A stretch of 64,000 nucleotides of DNA. Origin: Selaginella moellendorffii (Eukaryota; Plantae; Lycopodiophyta). The notes under the pieces were generated by a model. That model did not search any database and was not told where the DNA came from. It worked only from the letters and a program-made list of their open reading frames with translations. The position numbers and the translations under genes are program-made. This document shows, piece after piece, positions 568 through 51,619 of the stretch. Within the stretch, counting starts at the first letter, position 1. Each line of letters starts with the position of its first letter. The stretch spans positions 714,086 through 778,085 of the forward strand of contig NW_003314325.1 in the NCBI RefSeq assembly GCF_000143415.4. Direction: 5' to 3'.

Positions 568-985
568 CTCATGGCTGCTTGGAGGAGGCTAAATGTTTGT
601 TTGAGAGGCACGTGGTGGCTTGGAACTCCATGCTTGGCACATATGCCTCGAATGGGCATTTGGACGAGGCACTAGATTCCTTCCTAAAGATGGCTCACAA
701 TGATCCATATGCTCACCTCTAGAAACCATCTTGAAAATGCAAAGTTTATTTATGATCGAATGCTTTACAAGAGCAAGATGGCGCGCACAGTGCTCCTCTC
801 GGCCTATCTCTGGAATTGGCCACCTCCAAGAAGCGATGAGCCTCTTCTGGGCACCAAACTCAAGTTTCCAAGAGGAGTCCCTTGTGAGCAAAAGCTGGCA
901 CCATTGCCATCCAGACGATTGCATTGCGCTCCTTGCTCATGAGAGAATGCCAGAGCAAGACTTAGTCTCACACACACAATGTTAA
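568..985 (+). pseudogene. PPR gene fragment
   Basis: HGCLEEAKCLFERHVVAWNSMLG.YASNGHLDEAL and NHLENAKFIYDRM are PPR-like motifs broken by frameshifts. Confidence 0.8.
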
Positions 986-1975
986 GAGTTAAATTCCAAG
1001 ACTGATGTAAAACACTTACCGAGGTGACAACACATGACTCGCCCCAGTATCGAGATAGGACTTCACGTTCCCCAAGTTCATACCACCATGGATCTGCAAG
1101 CCACTTGAAATGTAGCAGAAAACAGCGCTTCTCAACATCTGGAAATTGTATACGCTTCCAGTGCCACGAGCGCTGCCTTCAGGGTCAATGAACGTGTCCT
1201 CCGACTCGAAATTCACAACCAGTGAAGACTGTGACAAATCCAGCAGAGTAGACCCGGCCAGCAAGATCATCCATTTCTTGACCACTTTATTTTCTCGAGT
1301 CAAGCTTAACTTCAAAGAACAAAAAATGGCCTAGCCGTGTAAAGGAAGGCTAAGATCCACAGAAAAAACGTCATGGAAAACACACAGAGAGTTATACTAT
1401 TGAGCACTGTAGTTTGCTGATGGATTGCCATGGTCATCGCTGGTGTGGACACAGAAACTATCGAGATTTTGGAGAAAGAACTAAACAAAACTGCAGCAGC
1501 AAAAGCCGCAGCGATGACCAGGCATGAGAGGAGCGATGCAAGCACAAGCTTTCGAGTAGGAGCCACAATTTCTGGAGAGCCAAGAGAAAAGAGAATAGAT
1601 TGAGCAAACAAAGGGGGCAATCTCCCATATATAAAGATCCAAGAGCACGAACTCACACAAAAGCTCGCACAAACTTTTACTCCAGTGGCAGTAGTAGCAC
1701 CTTAACGTTGATAACCATGGTTTCACCACCATGGTTGGAATGATCTACAATGAAACACACGTTCTCAATGCTCAAGTCAGAATAGATATCAGCGAAAGAT
1801 GAACATCTTGAGGCGAGTTTAGATTGGAGCTAAAGGAAATTTGGAGCTGTTGGATTCTTTCTCAGCCGGCAAACTTCCGCCTTCAGTGACTCAAATCCGC
1901 TTTACATCCATGCTGGAGGTCAGAACCAAAGCTACTGAACTCTCTCTGCGTTCCAGAATATGCAATCGAACAAAT

Positions 1976-2095
1976 CTTCAGTTATGTCAAGGTTCGTTCC
2001 CAGTAAGTTCAGTTCACTAGTACTGCGCATACTCCTCTCAAACTGTGGATTGCCATTTAAGCGGGACAACGCTCCCACCTCCAAAACCAGCGAGC
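1976..2095 (-). pseudogene. Captured exon fragment of a GH47 alpha-mannosidase (MNS5/EDEM-like)
   Basis: GSLVLEVGALSRLNGNPQFERSMRSTSELNLLGTNLDIT resembles GH47 GSLILEMGALSRLTGDPRFE...MRSSLDLLGTTLDV and is preceded by the acceptor ttttttctctcag. Other copies: about 7115-7234 (-), 54791-54910 (+), 59795-59914 (+). Confidence 0.7.
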
Positions 2096-2225
2096 CTGAG
2101 AGAAAAAATCCATGAAATTTTCTACGGCCAGAATTATGGTATATTTAGTAAAGTGTATTTAATTTGATTTATAAAGATCCTTTACAATTAGGGCTTGTGT
2201 TCTTTCTTTCTTTTTTATCACAGCG

Positions 2226-2870
2226 ATGAAGAGGGCAAGAGAATATGGCGATTGGAGTTTTGCAACACTCAACATGGTGACCAAAGTAAAGAACAAAAAG
2301 GTAAAGGTGACATACAGTTCTCCACTACTACCGCCAGTTTTGGAGGAGAAACCCACTCTTGTGTTAGACATGGACAAGACACTAATCCATGCCCACAAGG
2401 CCACAGCGTCCCTCAAGCTCTTCAGTGGGAAGACTCTTCCATTGCAGCGCTACCTTGTCGCAAAGCGGTTGGGTGTGGATACATTTCTAAATGAGATGAG
2501 TCAGATATATGAGATTGTGGTTTTTACTCGAGCTGTGAAGCCTTATGCGGACAGGATATTGGATAGGCTCAACCCAGCTGGGAATCTCTTCACCCATCGC
2601 CTCTACAGAGATTCATGCTCGCCCAAGGAAGTGGGAGGGAGAAAGGTTGTGAAAGATTTTTCGAGATTAGGGCGGGACCTCAGACACACGGTGATCGTGG
2701 ACGACAAGCCAGAGTCCTTTTGCTTGCAGCCCAGCAATGGAATTGTCATCCGTGCATTCAAAAACAGGAAAGGGCATAAATATGATGAATTGAAGAAGAT
2801 AAGCAATCTGCTTAAGGAAATTGCAAGAGCTGAAGATGTAAGACAAGCGTTGGAGAAGCTTAAAAGTTAG
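2226..2870 (+). CDS. FCP1/SCP-like (NIF domain) HAD phosphatase, intronless, 214 aa
   Basis: LVLDMDKTLIH (DxDxT), YEIVVFT, YADRILDRL, HRLYRDSC, VKDFSRLGRDL, IVDD, QPSNGI. Confidence 0.88.
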   Translation: MKRAREYGDWSFATLNMVTKVKNKKVKVTYSSPLLPPVLEEKPTLVLDMDKTLIHAHKATASLKLFSGKTLPLQRYLVAKRLGVDTFLNEMSQIYEIVVFTRAVKPYADRILDRLNPAGNLFTHRLYRDSCSPKEVGGRKVVKDFSRLGRDLRHTVIVDDKPESFCLQPSNGIVIRAFKNRKGHKYDELKKISNLLKEIARAEDVRQALEKLKS

Positions 2871-3166
2871 ACAAAAGATCTTGTAAAGAGAAACTCATGT
2901 ATCCACTGTGTATGCTGTAACACTGCTCACTCTAAATTGATTGTGGCACTGTCTCCCTCACAAAAACAAATGTCCAATTTAGCTTTGGAAACAATGTTAT
3001 GGCAAATCATAATCAGAAAGACATCTCGAGTTTCAGTCTGATTCATTACTTGAGAGTCAATCGATAATTGTGATGCTTAAGCAGCGTCATCCTGTCTGTC
3101 CTGAAACGCAACGTAGAGCCTCCCAAAATCCCATGGCTCGATCACCTGGCCTATTAGTGTGGCTTG

Positions 3167-3409
3167 ACAAGAGTGGTATATAGTTTAGATACGATCTCAT
3201 TATGCTCACTATTTTGTTGTCCATCCCCACCTACAAATCAAACATGGACGAGAGTGGTATATAGCTTGGATACGATCTCATTATGCTCACTGTTTTGTTG
3301 TCCATCCCCACCTACAAATCAAACATGGACGAGAGTGGTATATAGCTTGGATACGATCTCATTATGCTCACTGTTTTGTTGTCCATCCCCACCTACAAAT
3401 CAAACATGG
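3167..3409 (+). repeat. 81-bp minisatellite, 3 copies
   Basis: Unit ac(a/g)agagtggtatatag...cctacaaatcaaacatgg starts at 3167, 3248 and 3329. Right-array units carry only 2 copies (about 53563-53725, 58567-58729, 63595-63755). Confidence 0.95.
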
Positions 3410-3459
3410 AGTGAGGAAAACAAAACGAAAACAAAGTTTGTAAACGACAGAAGTTTATA

Positions 3460-4035
3460 CCTGTAAGATATCTCCAGTGAATAAAACACCTCTCCCTTGA
3501 GCTCCATGAGACCAGTGGAGGATTTGTGCAACAGCAAAATGGCTAAAAGCGTGAGTCCCTCCCATAGTAGAACTTAACCTTTTCGTGCTGGTAAACCACT
3601 CTACAAAAGTATGGATACAGAAAGATCGAAATGAAAGAGAGAAACAAAGGTAGACAATACCATTCGTGGGTATAAACCAGGACGCCTCCAAAAGCCTCGC
3701 TCCATCGAGAGTTTGTGCTGTAGTAATGCGGGTGAGAGATGGCAATCGCTCTCAATCCACCTAGTGACTTGGTTATCTCCACTGTGGCATCGTCTAGAAA
3801 TGAGATGCAGTCCCACAGTATGTTTCCCTCTATCAAAAACATAAAAACCATAAAAAATGCACAACGGCCATAGCTCCAAACATACATACCTTGAGTCTGG
3901 ATGAGAAACGCACGCTGTCCAATGCCAAACTTTGGAAAGGTTATGATCTCGAAGACCTGCGGCTCATGCTTCTTGATACCATTGCGAAACTGCAATCTCA
4001 TCTTGCTCATGGACGTCCATACCTGACCTTCCCTA
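3460..4035 (-). pseudogene. Intron-containing fragment of a metallo-beta-lactamase-fold hydrolase
   Basis: GQVWTSM...FGIGQRAFLIQTQ | EGNILWDCISFLDDATV..IKSLGGLRAIAISHPHYYS...WSEAFGG, then GRGVLFTGDILQV, with GT-AG introns. Lacks start and C-terminus. Confidence 0.8.
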
Positions 4036-4303
4036 AAACTAAAAGTCAAGAAAACTCGAGACCTCCAGGATTTCTGACAAAACATCCCACCCAGACGTGT
4101 GCCTCCATAACTTTGAAATCCAAGAGTGTTAACGAGGATTCTCGTGGTGTCTTTGTAGAAAGCAATAACGCCGTGCATTGCTTAGAAACCTTAAGAGATA
4201 ACCAAGATCTCAGTAGAAGGACAAACTTGTTAAAACTCGAGGAGAAAGATTGACAGACCTTGAGATCCTCTGGAGATATCAGCTGCTGGATGTGGTGGAG
4301 GCG

Positions 4304-4357
4304 GAGCAGAACCTCAGGTCAGACCCTGCTTATCTTGCTTACTATCACTCGCATGTC
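4304..4357 (+). pseudogene. Pumilio (APUM1-6 type N-terminal region) micro-fragment
   Basis: [18 protein letters not shown] resembles the conserved plant Pumilio motif [16 protein letters not shown]. Confidence 0.6.
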
Positions 4358-4825
4358 CAAGCCTCCTGTTTGAGCGCTCCATTGAAGCAAGCGCATATAA
4401 CACGGTTAAACACGTTTCTTACTGGAAAGCCATCGGTATAGAGCAGCTGACGACTATCAGCTAGAACGCAGCGTATTTGGAGGGTTCCAGTCTCTATGGC
4501 CACCTATTTTTCACTCGTTTAGTTCTCTCCAAAATATAAATGAGTTTTCTTGTACCTGTAGATGGACTTAGGACAGACGTCCGAGATGTAGATCGTATAG
4601 TAGATGTGCATTTCATGTAGACGATGTTTCCATAAGTATGGATAGTGCTGTCCTTTTGGAAAGTGCTGGCTTGTCCGATCATCACAACCGTGTCAACATA
4701 ATCGGAAAACTCACAACTGGAAGAGAAGAAACAAGAAGAGAGCAAACGGAATAAGAGCTTACCGGATAGGATGGATCTTGCACTGCCGCTGAGACGCTCA
4801 ACCCAAACGTAAGTTGCGCAACACA

Positions 4826-4920
4826 CTAGGAGATGATATCCTTTTGATCCATCGCCCGGAAAACCAGCCTGCTCTCTTCCACTTGTGTCCAGGAAGTTAA
4901 TTGTGTCGTTGACGAGCGCG
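4826..4920 (-). pseudogene. PPR fragment on the opposite strand
   Basis: QVEESRLVFRAMDQKDIIS is PPR-like. Confidence 0.5.
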
Positions 4921-5089
4921 CCCGGCATTTGGAGTGCAGCTGAGCGATGGGGGATGAGTTCTCGCCGCGTGCCATGAAAAACATCGTGGCTGGACCATGG
5001 AAGCTAGAACCTGCCAGGACTTGAACCTCGGACGTCCCCATCATCCAACGGCCATGATGCGATGCGCATAAGAGCTTGCCGCATCTTGC

Positions 5090-6124
5090 GACAATGGCCG
5101 CCGGATCCATCGCCCACATCCTTCACAGCGACCACAACAACAGCGTCTTCCTGCGAAATGTCCTCGTCCAGATGTATGGCCGCTGCGGCTGCCTGGAGGA
5201 AGCGCGATCGGTCTTCGATTCTACCTCGGATCCCAATCTCTTCTCTTGGAATCTCACCCTCCAGGCCTACATTCGCAACCACGACCTGAAGCAGGCGCGA
5301 TCGGTCCTGGAAAGCATACCGCGGCAGGAGATTGTGTCCAGCAACGCCCATACGCCGCGGCCGGGGACGTGCAGCGCGCCAAGCAGCTCTTCGATCGCAT
5401 CCCTGCAAAGAATTCCATCACCTGGAACGCGATGATCGAGATGTACTCGCCCGAGGCGGAGGCGGTATTCCACTCCATGCCGGAGCAAACACTCGTTTCT
5501 AGCACGGCCATGATCGTGCCATATGCCCATAACGGGCATCTCTCACGCGCCGTGGACGGCCATGATCCAAGGCCACTGCCAGAACCGGCGGCTGGATGAA
5601 GCCAAAGATCTCTTTGAACGCCGGGCATATGGAGAAAGCAAAGGCCCCGGATCTTAATGAGGTGGCGTTTACGGCTATGATCGACGGCTATGCACCTCAT
5701 GGCTGCTTGGAGGAGGCTAAATGTTTGTTTGAGAGGCACGTGGTGGCTTGGAACTCCATGCTTGGCGCATATGCCTCGAATGGGCATTTGGACGAGGCAC
5801 TAGATTCCTTCCTAAAGATGGCTCATCTCTTGGGCAACAATGATCCATATGCTCACCTCTAGAAACCATCTTGAAAATGCAATGTTTATTTACGATCGAA
5901 TGCCTTACAAGAGCAAGATGGCGCGCACAGTGCTCCTCTCGGCCTATCTCTGGAATTGGCCACCTCCAAGAAGCGATGAGCCTCTTCCGGGCACCAAACT
6001 AAGTTTCCAAGAGTTGTCCCTTGTGAGCAAAAGCTGGCACCATTGCCATCCAGACGATTGCATCGCGCTCCTTGCTCACGAGAGAATGCCAGAGCAAGAC
6101 TTAGTCTCACACACACAATGTTAA
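5090..6124 (+). pseudogene. PLS-class PPR pseudogene fragment
   Basis: VFLRNVLVQMYGRCGCLEEARSVFD..PNLFSWN, GDVQRAKQLFDRIPAKNSITWNAMI and VAFTAMIDGYA occur across several frames. Confidence 0.85.
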
Positions 6125-7900
6125 GAGTTAAATTCCAAGACTGATGTAAAACACTTACCGAGGTGACAACACATGACTCGCCCCAGTATCGAGATAGGAC
6201 TTCACGTTCCCCAAGTTCATACCACCACGGATCTGCAAGCCACTTGAAATGTAGCAGAAAACAGTGCTTCTCAAAATCTAGAAATTGTATACGCTTCCAC
6301 TGCCGCAAGCGCTGCCTTCAGGGTCAATGAACGTGTCCTCCGACTCGAAATTCACAACCAGCGAAGACTGTGACAAATCCAGCAGAGTAGACCCGGCCAG
6401 CAAGATCATCCATTTCTTGACCACTTTATTTTCTCGAGTCAAGCTTAACTTCCAAAAACAAAACATGGCCTAGCCGTGTAAAGGAAGGCTAAGATCCACA
6501 GAAAAAACGCCATGGAAAACACACAGAGAGTTATACTATTGAGCACTGTAGTTTGCTGATGGATCGCCATGGTCGTCGCTGGTGTGGACACAGAAACTAT
6601 CGAGATTTTGGAGAAAGAACTAAACAAAACTGCAGCAGCAAAAGCCGCAGCGATGACCAGGCACGAGAGGAGCGATGCAAGCACAAGCTTTCGAGTAGGA
6701 GCCATAATTTCTGGAGAGCCAAGAGAAAAGAGAATAGATTGAGCAAACAAAGGGGGCAATGTCCCATAGATAAAGATCCAAGAGCCCGAACTCACACAAA
6801 AGCTCGCACAAACTTTTACTCCAGTGGCAGTAGTAGCACCTTAACGTTGATAACCATGGTTTCACCACCATGGTTGGAATGATCTACAATGAAACACACG
6901 TTCTCAATGCTCAAGTCAGAATAGATATCAGTGAAAGACGAACATCTTGAGGCGAGTTTAGATTGGAGCTAAAGGAAATTTGGAGCTGTTGGATTCTTTC
7001 TCAGCCGGCAAACTTCCGCCGTCAGTGACTGAAATCCGCTTTACATCCATGCTGGAGGTCAGAACCAAAGCTACTGAACTCTCTCTGCGTTCCAGAATAT
7101 GCAATCGAACAAATCTTCAGTTATGTCAAGGTTCGTTCCCAGTAAGTTCAGTTCACTAGTACTGCGCATACTCCTCTCAAATTGTGGATTGCCATTTAAG
7201 CGGGACAACACTCCCACCTCCAAAACCAGCGAGCCTGAGAGAAAAAATCCATGAAATTCTTTACGGCCAGAATTATGGTACTCTAAAGAGTATAGTCTCT
7301 CCAATTTAGAGATTCATTCGACCACTTGTGGTGGTTCTTTCCTTTTATTGATTCAGTTTTTGTTAAACCTATTAAAGACACCTTCTTTAACTCAATCCCA
7401 CTATTCATTATGGAGTAATCTCAGTTTTCATTGATATAAACTTTGCACTTTGGAATTTTTAATCTTGATTTCTTAAAGTCAATTTCCTGGGTATCTTTGA
7501 CACCTTGCATTGCACATATTATGCAATTCCACTTTCCCTTCTTAGGAAGTTCTATATTTGAGGGCACCATCATCTTCTCTTTTATTTCGTGTCAACTTTG
7601 ACATTAAGTTTCAGTTATCATAATATGTGCTAAGGTTATTCACGGCTTTATCATTTGGCTACCTTACCGCTCCTTCCTTTGAAATTTTCATTTTTGCTAA
7701 ATCAAAGTAATTGGAAATCCATCCTAGAAACCAAAGGCTTTAAAAAAAAATCTCTCATACTTGCTAAGGATTTAGTGATATGTTTGACAAGTCACTCTAA
7801 AGCGTCCACATAATACATGCTACAGCAAGGTAGGCTACTATTCTGTAAGTTGTTTGGAATTGCTTGAATTGTTTTCATCATGTTGGATTTTCATTTACAG

Positions 7901-44545: not shown

Positions 44546-44906
44546 AGCCGCTCGCGGCACTGCTGCGGTCTGCAGAGACAAACCAAAAGATCAGAAATCC
44601 CTTGCTGTTTTGTACCTTAAGACGGACGAATATCCAATCAACATCGTGTGCGCTAGATCTAGCCACGTAAGTTTGATCTGCTCAAGTCGAGCTTACGATT
44701 AAATAGAAACTGCTCGACTTTGCATGAACGTACCTGGTCTGTTGCGGTGAGACACCGAATTCCTGGGAGGAAAAGAACACCCGCAGCTGCAAAACTATAA
44801 GGGACGGCGTGCATAGAATGAAACAAAAAACAATACCTGTCATGCCGGAACACCCGTTTTCATTTCGTGAAAAAGGATCGCTGCATTTTTATGAAGAAGG
44901 TTTGCC

Positions 44907-47603
44907 ATGGCTCCTCCATCAACAGTCACCTGTAAGTCCCGGTGCAATGTCAGTATCACGAAGGGATCTCAACCAAATGGAAAGGAACAAGGCAACCAGG
45001 ATGCAGGAAAATGTAAGCACTACTGTGGCAAAGGCACTCACGAGCTTCCTTCTTGCACAGGTCGCTCTTTCCACCCGTTGGATCCCTTGCAACCGTCGGA
45101 GATTGTAGCAGCAGCGCATGTTATCAAAACTGCACTTGCACCAACACTTGTGAGTTCTTTCTCTTTGCACGCAACCTCACGAAAATGGTTCTTACAGGCC
45201 AAAAGCGGCGTCATAAACTTCATCGAGGTGATCCTCGACGAGCCAGAGAAGACGCTGCTTGCTCTGTATCAATGTCAACTCCAAGTGAAACACAACCATC
45301 GACAGCTAGTACGTCCTCCAAGACAAGCAAGGCTGACCGTGTACAATGCACACAACAATGAAACAAGTCTCTGGGTTGTAGAATTACCAGCAGCGCCGAG
45401 AGCTCCCAAAGTCTTGTGGTGCCAGTACATTCCAGACGTCCAGCCTCCAGTGGTAAGTTTTCATAATTCCTTGCATGATAGACAAGAACGTGTAAGTGAC
45501 CAGCAGGGAACAGAGGAATACGTGCTCTGTGAAGCAATCGTAAAATCGCACAAGCCACTAATAGAGGCATTGAGAAAACGAGGAATCACTAACACTGACC
45601 TGATCATGGTGGACACCTGGTAAGCCTTGCGGAATTCGCTTGTCGGAAACATGAACTTTGTGCAGGTGCACTGGTTACCACGAAGAAAAGGATGCTCCAA
45701 GTCGTAGACTGGCGAGACCGCTTATGTTTTATAGAACTGAGAGCTCCTGTCCGATGGAAAACGGCTACGCGAGACCGATAGAAGGCCTGTCGCTGCTAGT
45801 TGATCTCCAGAACATGAATGTCGTCGAACTCGAGGAGAGAGAAGCTGCTCCGCTTCCGCCACCAGATCCAATGAGGAACTACACACCAGCTTGTGTTCCA
45901 GGAGGCCTCCGAACCGACGTCAGGCCGTTGCAGATTTTACAACCTGGAGGACCAAGTTTTGAAGTTAATGGATACGAAGTAACCTGGCAAAAGGTAAAGG
46001 TTTCTCGAGTGCTCTTGAGACTAACCTGCTCGTTTTTATCTCAGTGGTCCTTTCGCCTGGGATTTACTCCACGAGAAGGTCTAGTAATCCACAGTGTAGC
46101 GTATAGCGACGGTTCTCGAGGTCCGAGGTCTGTGGCTCACAGGTTGAGCTTCGTAGAGATGATAGTCCCTTACGGAGATCCTGCAGAACCACATTACAGA
46201 AAAAATGCTTTCGATGTAGGAGAAGACGGACTTGGGAGGAATGCTCACTCGCTGAAAAAGGTAGGATGACTAGCAGACATGTAAGCTCACGACCTGTTTG
46301 CTTTGGCAGGGATGCGATTGCTTAGGATACATTCACTACTTCGATGCGTATCTCACGGACCAAAAGGGAGACGTCGAAACACTCGAAAATGCAATATGCT
46401 TACACGAAGAAGACAATGGCATACTGTGGAAGCACAAGGATTGGAGGACAGGTCTTTCTGAAGTCCGAAGATCTAGACGGCTCACCGTTTCTTTCATATG
46501 CACTGTCGCAAACTACGACTATGGCTTCTACTGGCACTTCTACCAGGTAGATCAACAAGCATCCTAACAATCCAGACTATCACTAAAGCTCCCTACTTAG
46601 GATGGGAAAATAGAGGCTGAAGTGAAACTTACCGGCATTCTGAGCCTCGGAGCGATTCAGCCCGGCGAGCAAAGGAAAAACGGAACGGTCATAAGCACTG
46701 GATTATATGCTCCGATACACCAGCACTTTTTTGTAGCACGCATGAACATGGCAGTCGACAGCAAACCTGGAGAAGCAGAAAATCAGGTACTTGAAGCTCA
46801 ATATGAAACTATCACCTTTCCTTGCCTCGGCTCATTGTTTCTGAGTCCTTGTTTCTCAGGTTGTAGAGGTTAACGTTGTGCCAGAGCCACCGGGTCCAAA
46901 CAATCCTCATTGCAACGCATTCTACGCCAAGGAGACGCTGCTAAAATCCGAAATGCAAGCTCAGAGAGACTGCAATCCTTTATCTGCACGACACTGGATA
47001 GTAAGTAGACTCAACAACGAAGAAAAAACTTCATGCTCGACTTCTATGACAATGCAGGTAAGAAACACCAAAGTTGTGAATCGAGCTGGCGGAAACACAG
47101 GCTACAAGCTTGTTCCCGGAGCAAACTGCCTGGGATTCATCGGCAAGGACGCGATGATCCTGCGAAGAGCCGAGTTTCTCAAGCACAACCTCTGGGTAAC
47201 CAGCTATAGCAAAGACGAGCTCTACCCAGCCGGCGAGTTCCCCAAGCAAAACCCCCGCATTGGAGAAGGCCTGCCGACCTGGGTGAAAAAGGACCGCGAT
47301 CTCGAGAATGCCGACATCGTCCTGTGGTAATACTCTAGGATCGATCTCTCCTTCCTCTCTTCTCGCAAAATCTCCTAGTTCTCGATCGATGCAACGCAGG
47401 TACGTATTTGGAGTGACACACATACCTAGGCTCGAGGATTGGCCCGTGATGCCAGTGGAGCGCATCGGATTCACACTCACGGTAGGAATCCTCGATCGCT
47501 TGCTATGGCGCCGCTAACGAGTGATCGATGGATTGCGCAGCCGCATGGATTCTTCGACTGCTGCCCGGCGATCGACGTTCCCCCAAATCAGAATGGCGCT
47601 TAA
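44907..47603 (+). CDS. Copper amine oxidase (CuAO-zeta-like), multi-exon
   Basis: [43 protein letters not shown] (TPQ site), [34 protein letters not shown]. Confidence 0.95.
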
Positions 47604-47728: not shown

Positions 47729-48937
47729 TCAGATCTTCGTGGCTTCCTCCTCTTGCTTCTTCTGGGCATCGCGAGCGATCCCTCTCTTGCGAATGTTCAA
47801 GCTCGTCTTCAAGCGATTGGCATCGAGAGTGTGCTCCCGGAACAATCCCCTTATGAACCACAGCAGCGAGTGGAGGAAGTAGGGAGTGACGCGGGCCTCG
47901 TAGCCGATCCATCGCATCGCGCACTGCGCGTAAGTATCCGGCGAGGGACAGGCCAGAGAAGGCTTTCGCACTCGCGTCATTTTCGTGGCGACATATAGAG
48001 GAACCTGTGACAAAAAAGAAACAAAAAAGAACGAGCGATCACTTCCAAAGTTTGTGGAAATGGTCTACTGGTACCTGGCACTGGATGTCGATTCCTACAT
48101 CCCGGTACTCCACATTCAGTGACTTCGAGAATTGGTCGACGAATCTGTGCGAAAAAAAAAAGTGTTTTGCAGCTTAGAACAGCGAAACTTGAAGAAGAAG
48201 AAAGGAAGAACAATGAGAGGAGGAAGAAACCCTTTGGTCGCCGCGTAGAGCGAGTATAATGGATCCGAGGAGAGAATGGACGCTGCCCCGGAGCCCATAT
48301 TGATGATACATCCTTTCCTCCGTTTGAGCATCCCCGGGAGAACCATGTGAACCATTCTCGTCATCGCCTCCACGTTGATCCGGAGGAGATTGGTGAGGAG
48401 CTCGTCGTCCACCTCGTGAAAGAATCGCGCGTAAGGATACGACATACCCGCGTTGTTCACCAGCATTCCCACCTCGAGCCCCTCGATCGCCCGCTCGACC
48501 CTCGACACCTCGGCCCGGAGATCCGGCCCGCAGAGATCGACCACCACGGGGAGATAATCCACGCCCTTGTACAGCGCCTGGAATTCCTGGATCATGTCGC
48601 GGAGCTTGGATTCCGAGCGGCCGACGAGCACCAGATTGAGGCCGCGCTGCGCGAACTGGTGGCACAGCGCCTTGCCGATTCCATCCGTGCAGCCCGTGAC
48701 CAGCGCCCAGGCGCCGTAATCCCTGACATTCTTGGCAGGCCGGAGGAATGCGGCCCAAATCCAAATGGAAAGCGCGTAGAGGAGGCGAAATCCACAGAGC
48801 ATACCGAAGATCGCCAGCGCCTTGACAACGGGGATGTAGTGCTGGACGCATGCGAAGGCGAGAGCTGTGATTCCAATATTGCTCGCGTTCTCCATCAGGA
48901 ACTCGGACAGGATCTGCGCAGGCCCCGGTGTCGTCAT
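47729..48937 (-). CDS. KCR: Very-long-chain 3-oxoacyl-CoA reductase (SDR), 3 exons
   Basis: YGAWALVTGCTDGIGK, LVNNAGMSYPYARFFHEVD, YAATK, QVPLYVATKM. Confidence 0.94.
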
Positions 48938-49221
48938 TTCGATCGGATCGATGGAGCGAGCGAGCGAGCGCCAAGCAAAGCGCGCCGAGAATAACCTAAG
49001 CTAAAGACTCCACAAGACAATCCCCGCCGTTGGCTCCCAGACCATCGGAGCCGTCCACCGCCTTGAGCGCATTCATTGAGCGCCCAGAAGTTTGGTCTGT
49101 GACCTATTTAAAAGCGTCGGATATTCCTTTCAACGGCCAGCTTTTATTCCTTGCCAGCTCGGCACCACTCTCTCGAAATTTTGTAGGGTTCTTGCGAGTC
49201 TTCTTGGCAGATTGGGGAGAT

Positions 49222-50129
49222 ATGGGCAATCCGGTGGGGCTTCCTCTACTGCTGGCGATCACTAGCGTCATCGCGACGGCATTTAAGTGGCATTCCGCGC
49301 CTCACAAGGTGCCATTCTGGTGGAATCTGCAGGGTAAAATCCATAGATTTCTATCGGCATTGTCTGATATCTAGATCTTCTAGGGCATCCCGTGGCCTGG
49401 GTGCCGCGATGGATCGGTCTCTTCGCGCTCCCGGTGCTCCAGTTCCTGATTCCATATGTCATCTATCAATTCGCCGCGCGCGATAGGGATCTGGAGCGAC
49501 AGGGGTGAGTGATTTCTCCCAATTCTTCCAGATCTAGCACGGGAAATCTGATCGTCTGGGTGGATTTCCAGCGGAGAGTCAAAGCACGCGGCAGCACACG
49601 TGATATCCGTGCCGGCATTGTTCCTGTTCTTCGTTCACATTTTCGTGATCTTAGATGCGGCAACGAGTCCCAGCCATGACTTTCATCCTCGTCTCTTCGT
49701 TGCGAGCATAGCCTTGTGGCTACTCTTCTGGTTTGGATATAACATCCAGGTACCATCGAATTTTCATGCCTTGATCTTTCATGGTTTCATGCGATTTCTT
49801 CTTTGATTCTTCCAGTATGTGGAGTTTAATTCCACCATTGGCATTCTAACCCCATGGACAGTATCAAATTCTACTGTCTGGAAGCAAACCCAGAATCATG
49901 CAAGTACGTGACATTCTTTTGGTTCCTTTGGTTTTTTTTTAACAAAACTTTGTGTGTAGGTGTGATTCTTATGTTGTTTGGAATCATATTACTCATTATT
50001 TCGCTGGTGTGCCCCTTGGGAACTGGATTTTTAGTGACAACTCTAGTGCTTATATTTGCTCCTTTCTTTTATTTCCTGATTTATTCTTATTGTATCTTAT
50101 CAAACAGTGGCGAACGATTACTACCTTGA
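49222..50129 (+). CDS. SdpI/DUF1648-like integral membrane protein, 5 exons, 222 aa
   Basis: Exons 49222-49333, 49384-49504, 49572-49749, 49816-49903 and 49960-50129 have GT-AG introns and total 669 nt in frame. Motifs PHKVPFWWNLQG and NSTIGILTPWTVSNSTVWKQT, about 6 hydrophobic segments. Confidence 0.82.
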
Positions 50130-51619
50130 ATAATGCAATATATAAGTAACCATATTCTATCTTAACTAAGTAGCTCTTCTTAATGAGACATGTTTAGGTT
50201 GAAAGTTTATAAATATAAACATAAATATAAATATATATATAAATATAACTATTTTCTGCTAGTAATTATGAAAATTTTAAATATAATTTGTAAAACACAA
50301 ATCAACACTAAAATAGTTTATAGGTTATAAATATGTTTATAAATTTTATAATAACAACTGTTAAATGGTTGAATATTCCAGAATGTCCAAACATATATCA
50401 ACTGCTAACAATGGATTTGCTTAAGCAAAATAATCATTTATAAAAATAAGAAAAAATTTATTTGGCAAAAAAAAATTTACTACCAAATAATTGTGATCTA
50501 AATCACAATAATCACTCAAAGACACACCACACATCCCCAACTCTATTGTAAGATTGGATGAGAAATGTGAATGGATTCTCTAGGTTTAATCAAGCTCACT
50601 AAAGCCTTAAATTGGCTCAAAATCTAAAAGATTTGCTATTGAAATTTGTAATTCAGCATATAATGATCACTCTTCTCATCTTCCTCCTAATCACAATTCT
50701 AGAAAACTTTGTATTTACTAGTATACATAGCTTCATATATAGATTTCATTCCTTGTTAATTTCAATAGTTTAGATTTACAATATGAGCTTGGTGGCTGAT
50801 TTCCTGTATATCATAAGCCATTACTACCATTTTTGGTTTGCTTAAGCAAAACTGTAGGAAGACTGAAATGGTAGTGACTATACTTGAAATATGCTTGAAT
50901 ATTCTAGGATGTTTTACAATCTAATGGTTATTATTCATTTAAATTAATCTTGTATTTATAATTTATAAACATGTTTATAATTTATAAAATTTCATAAACA
51001 CTTTCTAGTATATTCTATTTTATTCTACCATCTATGCAATAAGATTGATCTTATGTTTATAATTATGAATTTCCATTTGATCAAATGGATTAATAAATAA
51101 GAATAACACAACTATTAAGAAAATCAAAAATTGTTACATAGAAAATTATTAATCACGTAGGCTAACATGGGACAATATCAAACTAAAAATATGAAGTATT
51201 AAGATGGTTTAATAAAACAAAACTGAACAATTAATCTAGTAATTTTGGTGTAAAATTGGAGCTACACAATGGAATTAGGCAAAGCTCTTAATTCCTGTTT
51301 AGGAACAATCTCTTGGAAGATAACTTTGAGCAAGGAAGCTTTTTGCTTGAATCCATACCCTCATATATGTTTGAGCAGGGTTATTATAAATTCAAGAATA
51401 AATAAAGGCTATAATAAAAAGTGGAGAAAAGAAATGTAAATGCATGGAATTTAAGTGTGAGTTTGTGTTCGTGCTCCTGGATCTTTATCTATGGGAGATT
51501 TCCCCCTTTTGTTTGCTCAATCTATTCTCTTTTCTCTTGGCTCTCCAGAAATTATGGCTCCTACTCGAAAGCCTGTGCTTGCATCGCTCCTCTCATGCCT
51601 GGTCATCACTGCGGCTTTT

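Follow-up and report, generated by a model that had tools for sequence, protein, structure and literature searches.

An intron-bearing DUF1648–SdpI membrane protein gene in Selaginella moellendorffii and other non-seed land plants, with a plausible origin by ancient transfer from a prokaryote

A stretch of 64,000 nucleotides (nt) from the lycophyte Selaginella moellendorffii (NCBI RefSeq assembly GCF_000143415.4, contig NW_003314325.1, positions 714,086 to 778,085 of the forward strand; hereafter the window) carries at positions 49222 to 50129 the gene LOC112351656. This is a transcribed, spliced nuclear plant gene for an integral membrane protein of 222 amino acids (aa), and its product combines the two domains, DUF1648 and SdpI, of a family that is otherwise prokaryotic in everything searched. 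The preferred reading, to which a probability of about three in four is given, is that the gene belongs to an orthologue group of non-seed land plants that encodes a DUF1648–SdpI membrane protein and goes back to a single ancient prokaryotic acquisition by the ancestor or stem of land plants, with later loss in seed plants. The acquisition would have been from a bacterium or archaeon, and both this event and the loss in seed plants are deduced from the distribution of the gene.

Gene structure, transcripts and product

The gene was read in positions 48700 to 50700 of the window, with frames and splice sites checked. Five exons on the + strand contribute 37, 39, 59, 29 and 55 whole-codon residues, and the split codons GGG, GGC and AGT add a glycine, a glycine and a serine. 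The four introns, all with GT..AG borders, are 50, 67, 66 and 56 nt long. The initial annotation, made from the DNA letters, had proposed five exons with short canonical introns that splice into a 222-aa protein; this model proved exact, and its junctions were found in spliced contigs of four public runs. These runs (four studies, two organism labels) are presumed to be of RNA, and their contigs were placed on positions 48000 to 50600. All four runs have contigs from which introns 2, 3 and 4 are removed at the exact predicted borders, and two of them show the same for intron 1, which gives support to all four GT..AG junctions. Contigs of these runs that lack every intron can derive only from spliced RNA. 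The spliced contigs indicate a transcript from about 49130 to 50152. Within the 64-kilobase (kb) window there is no second copy of the SdpI-like gene. Its parts are as follows.

49130 to 49221, + strand: 5′ untranslated region, start approximate; the longest spliced contig (run X8) starts at 49130, and the ATG is at 49222
49222 to 49333, + strand: exon 1, coding part; residues 1–37 and the first base of codon 38, with membrane helix 1 followed by the first hairpin strand of motif 1
49300 to 49332, + strand: coding stretch of motif 1, first part, residues 27–37 (the rest is in exon 2 at 49384–49406); the His that is near-invariant in prokaryotes is Trp
49334 to 49383, + strand: intron 1, 50 nt, GT..AG, phase 1; absent from contigs of runs X4 and X8, position and phase the same in four other plant genes
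49384 to 49504, + strand: exon 2, 121 nt; residues 38–78 in part, with the second hairpin strand and helix 2
49505 to 49571, + strand: intron 2, 67 nt, GT..AG, phase 2; absent from contigs of all four runs, position and phase conserved
49572 to 49749, + strand: exon 3, 178 nt; residues 78–137, with helices 3 and 4
49750 to 49815, + strand: intron 3, 66 nt, GT..AG, phase 0; absent from contigs of all four runs, position and phase conserved
49816 to 49903, + strand: exon 4, 88 nt; residues 138–166 and one base, with the helix 4–5 loop that holds motif 2
49828 to 49893, + strand: coding stretch of motif 2, residues 142–163; N142, G146, T149, P150, W151, T152, W159 and T162 kept, the Arg of GIRTPW replaced by Leu and the usual His163 by Gln
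49904 to 49959, + strand: intron 4, 56 nt, GT..AG, phase 1; absent from contigs of all four runs, position and phase conserved
49960 to 50129, + strand: exon 5, coding part; residues 167–222 and the stop codon TGA (50127–50129), with helices 5 and 6, then a C-terminal tail that is specific to plants and ends E-R-L-L-P
50130 to 50152, + strand: 3′ untranslated region, end approximate; spliced contigs stop at 50146 (run X4) and 50152 (run X1)

Two minor transcript forms were seen at intron 1. A rare alternative acceptor at 49374, used in one run, adds 9 nt in frame and so lengthens the turn of the motif-1 hairpin by three residues, and a contig that retains intron 1 occurs in that same run (X1). 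Both forms have about 1% of the contig depth of the main form. The GC content declines along the gene, with values of 0.58, 0.62, 0.51, 0.41 and 0.35 for the five exons, and a very AT-rich stretch follows at about 50.2 to 51.5 kb.

The spliced product is letter-identical to RefSeq record XP_024545680.1 (LOC112351656, Selaginella moellendorffii, "uncharacterized protein", 222 aa). The five exon peptides are exact, ordered and abutting substrings of this record, and the three split-codon residues agree too. The gene with this exact splicing is already in RefSeq and UniProt, without an assigned function. A second record, XP_024515614.1 (LOC9640772, 222 aa), differs at four residues and is probably an allele or second haplotype of LOC112351656, and an older fused model of 525 aa (EFJ13053.1 / D8SRH7) is named "DUF1648 domain-containing protein". 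The route to the Selaginella proteins went through an exhaustive phmmer search with exon 3, the full-length relatives that it returned, an alignment of these with the five exon rows, and a profile search. Searches used the exons singly and, later, the database record XP_024545680.1 as the full product. No literature was found that ties SdpI, DUF1648, PF13630, PF07853 or the locus or protein identifiers to plants, and none that pairs SdpI with horizontal transfer in plants; DUF1648 is mentioned in four unrelated papers only, e.g., a fungal one.

Both domains predicted by the initial annotation, a DUF1648-like N-terminal region and an SdpI signature, were confirmed by profile hidden Markov models. 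With the full product, SdpI (PF13630) scored 47.1 bits (E value 2.7e-12; residues 141–209, profile positions 4–71 of 71) and DUF1648 (PF07853) scored 41.7 bits (E value 8.8e-11; residues 10–57, profile positions 1–48 of 49), above the respective Pfam gathering scores of 28.2 and 28.7 bits. The matches were collinear when the exons were searched one by one: exon 1 covered DUF1648 positions 1–27 (21.5 bits) and exon 2 positions 31–48 (14.2 bits), while exon 4 covered SdpI positions 4–29 (27.8 bits) and exon 5 positions 32–71 (7.8 bits). An exon-by-exon search of NCBIfam gave nothing relevant. In motif 1 (P..[VI][PA][VI]H[WF][NG]..G), P27, P31, W34, N35 and G38 are retained. The consensus of motif 2 is only partly kept, as Arg148 is Leu and His163 is Gln. 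These lost residues lower functional equivalence and not homology, since the SdpI profile is still passed.

SdpI of Bacillus subtilis and its paralogue YfhL are the founding members of PF13630 and of the SdpI family (Povolotsky et al. 2010, PMC2910880). In the standard members with six transmembrane segments (TMS), the loop that joins TMS 1 to TMS 2 holds motif 1, and the loop that joins TMS 4 to TMS 5 holds motif 2 (PMC2910880). An AlphaFold2 model of the Selaginella protein from a 52-row alignment (predicted local distance difference test 95.3, predicted template modelling score 0.88) has this standard layout, with the hairpin at residues 29–45 and motif 2 at 142–163. Its helices span residues 6–21, 46–70, 80–109, 117–136, 156–183 and 188–215; motif 1 forms a β-hairpin (29–34/40–45), and a short helix (150–154) lies inside motif 2. 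The protein has the complete DUF1648–SdpI architecture, i.e., six helices with the motif-1 hairpin between helices 1 and 2 and the motif-2 loop between helices 4 and 5. The model superposes on predicted structures of bacterial SdpI-family members with template modelling scores of 0.85–0.86 and root-mean-square deviations of 2.1–2.2 over 209–214 residues, and the nearest Atlas clusters, found by sequence features, consist exclusively of bacterial DUF1648/SdpI proteins of 210–231 aa. A search of the sequence profile against the PDB gave a best E value of 0.056; there is no solved relative in it, and hence no functional lead.

Relatives, shared introns and origin

Prokaryotic relatives were collected by scanning one genome per prokaryotic species with a motif-2 pattern taken from a five-row alignment of the C-terminal half. 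The scan gave at least 599 pattern matches, and 474 loci encode relatives. The best 80 of these 474 loci come from Chloroflexota (mostly Anaerolineales), Bacillota, Gemmatimonadota, Patescibacteria, DPANN archaea, methanogens and others. Their open reading frames (ORFs) are mostly of 205–235 aa and are 24–42% identical over the C-terminal half; over the full length, identity to prokaryotic homologues is only 18–24%. A profile built from plant sequences alone matched all 77 usable prokaryotic ORFs at 33–64 bits, and the top scores of 60–64 bits were shared by Methanomicrobiales, Patescibacteria, Chloroflexota, Gemmatimonadota and Bathyarchaeia. The best non-plant match in the profile searches with plant sequences was a 211-aa metagenome protein encoded directly behind an ArsR-type repressor gene, which is the classical sdpR-sdpI layout. 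Such an ArsR/SdpR-like helix-turn-helix gene, encoding 90–124 aa, lies immediately upstream in 17 of 81 loci (L001:594-1506 and 16 others), where it either overlaps the start of the SdpI-family gene, by 37 nt at most, or ends no more than 2 nt before it. The prokaryotic two-domain proteins share length, domain order and predicted fold with the plant protein, at 26–42% identity over the C-terminal half. They differ from it in being encoded by single ORFs, in a strong positive-inside bias and in the ArsR-type gene that precedes some of them, and no group among them is clearly closest to plants. One SdpI-family ORF from Patescibacteria (L058:2126-2800) has an in-frame stop under translation table 11 and was left out of the structure alignment. 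A code in which UGA is read as glycine is known from Patescibacteria and may explain this stop.

Plant homologues of 222–247 aa, each with both Pfam domains, were found by profile searches and a cluster look-up in the following groups.

Liverworts: Riccia sorocarpa (two genes)
Mosses: Sphagnum fallax, S. magellanicum
Lycophytes, besides Selaginella: Diphasiastrum complanatum (two genes)
Ferns: Ceratopteris richardii (two genes), Adiantum capillus-veneris (two genes), A. nelumboides, Pteridium aquilinum

The initial annotation had treated the gene as a feature of one early-diverging land plant. This view has to be abandoned, as liverworts, mosses, lycophytes and ferns share the gene with identical introns. 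In the five genes compared (Selaginella, Sphagnum, Riccia, Ceratopteris and Diphasiastrum), each with its protein fitted exactly to its own genomic DNA, four introns stand at homologous positions in phases 1, 2, 0 and 1. Exon 2 measures 121 nt in all five genes, whose shortest intron has 50 nt and whose longest has 15.4 kb. The shared positions and phases imply that the gene and its introns were already present in the common ancestor of land plants. Further plant-type copies occur in public metagenome/SRA contigs (L087:2076-4072 and L090:2463-4154); they have the same exon boundaries and are 45–57% identical to those of the named plants.

Could the gene be a bacterial contaminant or an annotation artefact? 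The otherwise prokaryotic family would fit such an explanation, but the gene has four spliceosomal introns that are removed in transcripts, four other plant genomes have these introns as well, intron-bearing plant genes flank it on the same contig, and its full-length identity to prokaryotic homologues is as low as given above. The gene is part of the host genome, carries introns and is expressed, as a transferred gene would be and a contaminant would not. The spliced transcripts and the introns shared with other plants exclude contamination and artefact for all practical purposes.

Outside these plants, no homologue from a seed plant, alga, fungus, animal or protist was found in a collection that includes nr, UniRef and EukProt, with searches that see shared five-residue words or one 59-aa exon only. 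Matches in EukProt were confined to Selaginella and the fern Pteridium. The exhaustive phmmer search with exon 3 gave 11 matches, which were full-length plant proteins, read-through genomic fragments and three long repetitive proteins; the last (P0006, P0008 and P0011) were judged chance matches. A genome scan with plant-only patterns gave 17 pattern matches and no relatives.

All 15 plant proteins fall into a single clade in a maximum-likelihood tree of 92 rows and 215 columns (LG+C20+F+G4). Every bootstrap tree contains this clade, whose support is 100/100 and whose stem measures about 2.4 substitutions per site. Within it, the sequences of ferns, of Riccia, of Sphagnum and of Diphasiastrum each form a monophyletic group. 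The tree is clear on the unity of the plant proteins and uninformative on where they attach among prokaryotes: across its 92 rows the plant clade nests in no identifiable prokaryotic group, and the best profile scores likewise show a flat mix of phyla. Collectively, these results point to a single origin before the radiation of land plants and vertical descent after it; any transfer predates the radiation. Within land plants the inheritance is vertical, with shared introns and one clade. In everything searched, the distribution outside plants is prokaryotic, which makes an origin by transfer from a prokaryote plausible, and one ancient acquisition would be the most economical reading of this distribution. 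What stands of the proposal is a genuine intron-bearing plant gene from a prokaryotic family with a plausible transfer in its past; no phylum stands out as the donor.

A different and rather improbable history would make the gene older than the land-plant stem, either eukaryotic or plastid-derived through endosymbiosis, and lost in algae, seed plants and other eukaryotes. The long stem and its uninformative attachment would allow an earlier date, eukaryotes were sampled through word-limited searches, and plant-like genomic fragments with the same exon layout do occur in public assemblies. However, these searches gave no algal, fungal, animal or protist match even though the collection includes nr, UniRef and EukProt, and no cyanobacterium is among the best 80 of the 474 prokaryotic loci. 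As the plant sequences begin without an N-terminal extension, they have no transit peptide, and an older origin would require many independent losses.

Several points also weigh against the preferred reading of a single prokaryotic acquisition at the base of land plants. First, the long plant stem attaches deep among mixed bacteria and archaea, so that the tree gives no root for the family and no proof of transfer, and the deep nodes among plants are not resolved in it. Second, the apparent absence of the gene from algae, hornworts, seed plants and other eukaryotes rests on the word-limited or single-exon (59-aa) searches. Third, the prokaryotic sample was chosen by the motif-2 pattern, and the invariance of this motif within it is partly circular. 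Fourth, ferns have lost TPWT of motif 2, and the loop may not be essential. Finally, comparison with solved structures gave only helical-bundle noise (Foldseek best E value 0.29, to the adiponectin receptor and TMEM175; VIA-align best Z 8.2).

A single ancient acquisition would have precedents. The MAG DNA glycosylase (PMC5570899) and the families of Yue et al. 2012 (PMC3493653) likewise combine a prokaryotic family, one intron-bearing plant clade and a date at the origin of land plants. Compared to those ancient transfers, the SdpI-like gene is apparently absent from seed plants rather than kept.

Genomic neighbourhood

The neighbours of the gene in the window are ordinary plant genes, namely a copper amine oxidase, a KCR-like short-chain dehydrogenase with an intron of its own, PPR fragments and a NIF phosphatase. 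Two of them are located as follows.

About 44900 to 47400, + strand: copper amine oxidase gene, multi-exon, upstream, with Cu_amine_oxidN3 and Cu_amine_oxid domains
48073 to 49030, − strand: KCR-like short-chain dehydrogenase gene, with an exon from 48231 to about 48937–48964 and a spliced 86-nt intron at 48145–48230

The KCR-like and SdpI-like genes stand head-to-head, with the 5′ ends of their transcripts only about 100–170 nt apart; from this distance, the two genes probably share a bidirectional promoter. In the KCR-like gene, the contigs of several runs share single-nucleotide differences from the window (at 48111, 48763, 48875 and 48878) and a 3-nt insertion after 48931, which fits two haplotypes or strains of one species. 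Downstream of the SdpI-like gene, an AT-rich gap is followed by a tandem array of a unit of about 5 kb that runs from about 52.1 kb to the end of the window (64000), with copies 94–98% identical. Inverted copies of this unit lie at 568–7280, and the units bear pieces of PPR-repeat and NIF-phosphatase sequence. When a profile of the 17 SdpR-like prokaryotic neighbours was run against the 64-kb window, cut into pieces in all six frames, no ArsR/SdpR-like sequence was found at E values up to 10.

Changes in the plant proteins and their possible role

Alignment columns were counted in 38 prokaryotic and 14 plant sequences. First, 37 of the 38 prokaryotic sequences have the motif-1 His, whereas all 14 plant sequences have Trp in its place. 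Second, none of the 14 plant sequences has the Arg of GIRTPW; this residue is invariant in the prokaryotic sample, partly as a result of the search pattern, and also belongs to the published family consensus (PMC2910880). The initial annotation had correctly read it as Leu in Selaginella, and the change extends to every plant homologue. Third, the mean number of Lys plus Arg residues in predicted cytoplasmic versus outer segments is 10.6 versus 1.5 in prokaryotes and 4.0 versus 2.1 in plants. Fourth, the plant C-terminal tail is longer and acidic and carries a conserved [EQ]PL[LV] motif that is absent from the prokaryotic rows. In bryophytes and lycophytes, the regions of both motifs show strong conservation. 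The motif-2 loop contains one or more NxS/T in all plant sequences, compared to 11 of 38 prokaryotic ones. N-glycosylation of this loop, as a sign of inverted topology, was considered and set aside: the invariant Asn is about six residues from helix 4, and the charges favour the bacterial orientation. Taken together, the sequence changes in plants argue for a functional shift relative to bacterial SdpI.

Comparison with Bacillus subtilis SdpI was made through family profiles, published motifs and models of related bacterial proteins. The Bacillus protein has 207 aa (table in PMC2910880) and the Selaginella protein 222 aa. The two types are alike in having six helices, with motif 1 in the loop of helices 1–2 and motif 2 in that of helices 4–5, and in both Pfam domains scoring above their cut-offs. 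Unlike the Bacillus gene, the Selaginella gene is eukaryotic and nuclear, has four introns and, in the window, stands without sdpR/sdpC context. Unlike proteins of the Bacillus SdpI type, the Selaginella protein has Trp for the motif-1 His, Leu for the GIRTPW Arg and Gln for the motif-2 His; it also lacks most of the cytoplasmic Lys and Arg residues and has the extra acidic tail with [EQ]PL[LV].

It is quite improbable that the plant protein has retained a role like that of Bacillus SdpI, in which the hairpin would neutralise an SdpC-like toxin of soil bacteria and the motif-2 loop would capture a cytosolic regulator. Such a role would agree with the position of both motifs in the same loops as in standard six-helix proteins (PMC2910880) and with the match between its predicted fold and those of bacterial family members. 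The strong conservation of the motif regions in bryophytes and lycophytes and the close contact of non-seed plants with soil Bacillota point the same way. However, no ArsR/SdpR-like sequence is found within the 64-kb window, and ArsR-type repressors are not known as a family in plants. Every plant copy has other residues in place of the GIRTPW Arg, the motif-1 His and most of the positively charged residues of the cytosolic loop; ferns have lost TPWT, and an SdpR-like neighbour accompanies only 17 of 81 related prokaryotic loci. The signalling branch of Bacillus SdpI, in which SdpR is sequestered, is most likely not retained in plants, judging from the window without ArsR-like sequence, the de-charged cytoplasmic face and the many prokaryotic relatives, the majority, without SdpR.

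Toxin immunity may not be the general role of the family at all, as suggested by the small share of loci with an SdpR neighbour together with the fact that SdpI is its sole characterised member (PMC11995493). Corynebacterium glutamicum TrpP, an SdpI-family member in a genome without SdpC or SdpR, has been proposed by its authors to bind a partner through the motif-2 half (PMC11995493). TrpP consists of only the C-terminal three-helix half with a C-terminal extension of its own, whereas the plant protein has both halves. The roles of bacterial members without SdpC and SdpR are unclear (PMC11995493). The absence of SdpC and SdpR from the TrpP genome indicates that roles in the family reach beyond immunity in cannibalism.

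A housekeeping membrane role unrelated to toxins, e.g., in the handling of small solutes or lipids or as a scaffold, is a possibility at clearly less than even odds. It would have been inherited from the general function of the family in prokaryotes. The family occurs across bacteria and archaea, including reduced genomes (Patescibacteria, DPANN), mostly without an SdpR neighbour. The conserved loops on opposite faces of the six-helix bundle and the conservation of the gene through the whole history of land plants are consistent with such a role, and a weak hint comes from one run in which the contig depth of the SdpI-like gene exceeds that of the neighbouring gene. However, the protein shows no likeness to a solved transporter or channel beyond the helical-bundle noise. 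Its two halves have no detectable repeat relationship: the internal 3+3 helix duplication proposed by Povolotsky et al. was not recovered (hhalign, N-terminal half versus C-terminal half, probability 1.7%). Loss in seed plants, and apparent loss in some bryophyte models, speaks against an essential role.

For the group of plant DUF1648–SdpI proteins as such, a tentative mechanism may be outlined. Helix 1 would probably serve as a signal anchor, as there is no transit peptide, and would direct the protein into the membrane of the secretory pathway or the plasma membrane. The bacterial orientation would be kept, with the hairpin exoplasmic and the motif-2 loop and C-terminal tail cytosolic. The protein would probably be a non-enzymatic, membrane-embedded binder, whose hairpin side may bind an external ligand, possibly an amphipathic peptide, while the remodelled cytosolic face and the acidic [EQ]PL[LV] tail may dock plant partners. 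Taken as a whole, with helix-1 anchor, outward ligand-binding hairpin and cytosolic plant partners, this mechanism is possible but rather unlikely to hold in every part. A bolder and very doubtful version would see a captured immunity protein against peptide toxins, kept for more than 450 million years as a membrane shield or receptor against SdpC-like peptides of soil bacteria, with its inward half rewired to plant partners by way of the de-charged motif-2 loop and the [EQ]PL[LV] tail, and later dropped by seed plants. If true, a bacterial anti-toxin device would have been reused in early plant–microbe interactions.

These results overturn nothing: many ancient transfers are known, and the gene was already in databases as an uncharacterized protein. 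Nevertheless, the SdpI/DUF1648 family has been treated in the literature as bacterial and archaeal, with one member of known function. A well-conserved land-plant branch with a fixed intron pattern would add another datable gene of prokaryotic descent to those of the first land plants, and its apparent loss in seed plants raises a further question. The consistent replacements in the plant proteins (Trp for the motif-1 His, the missing GIRTPW Arg, the reduced positive charge on the cytoplasmic side and the new C-terminal motif) offer hypotheses on how a bacterial membrane protein may be refitted to a eukaryotic cell. Ceratopteris, Sphagnum and Riccia provide a tractable eukaryotic entry to the SdpI/DUF1648 family.

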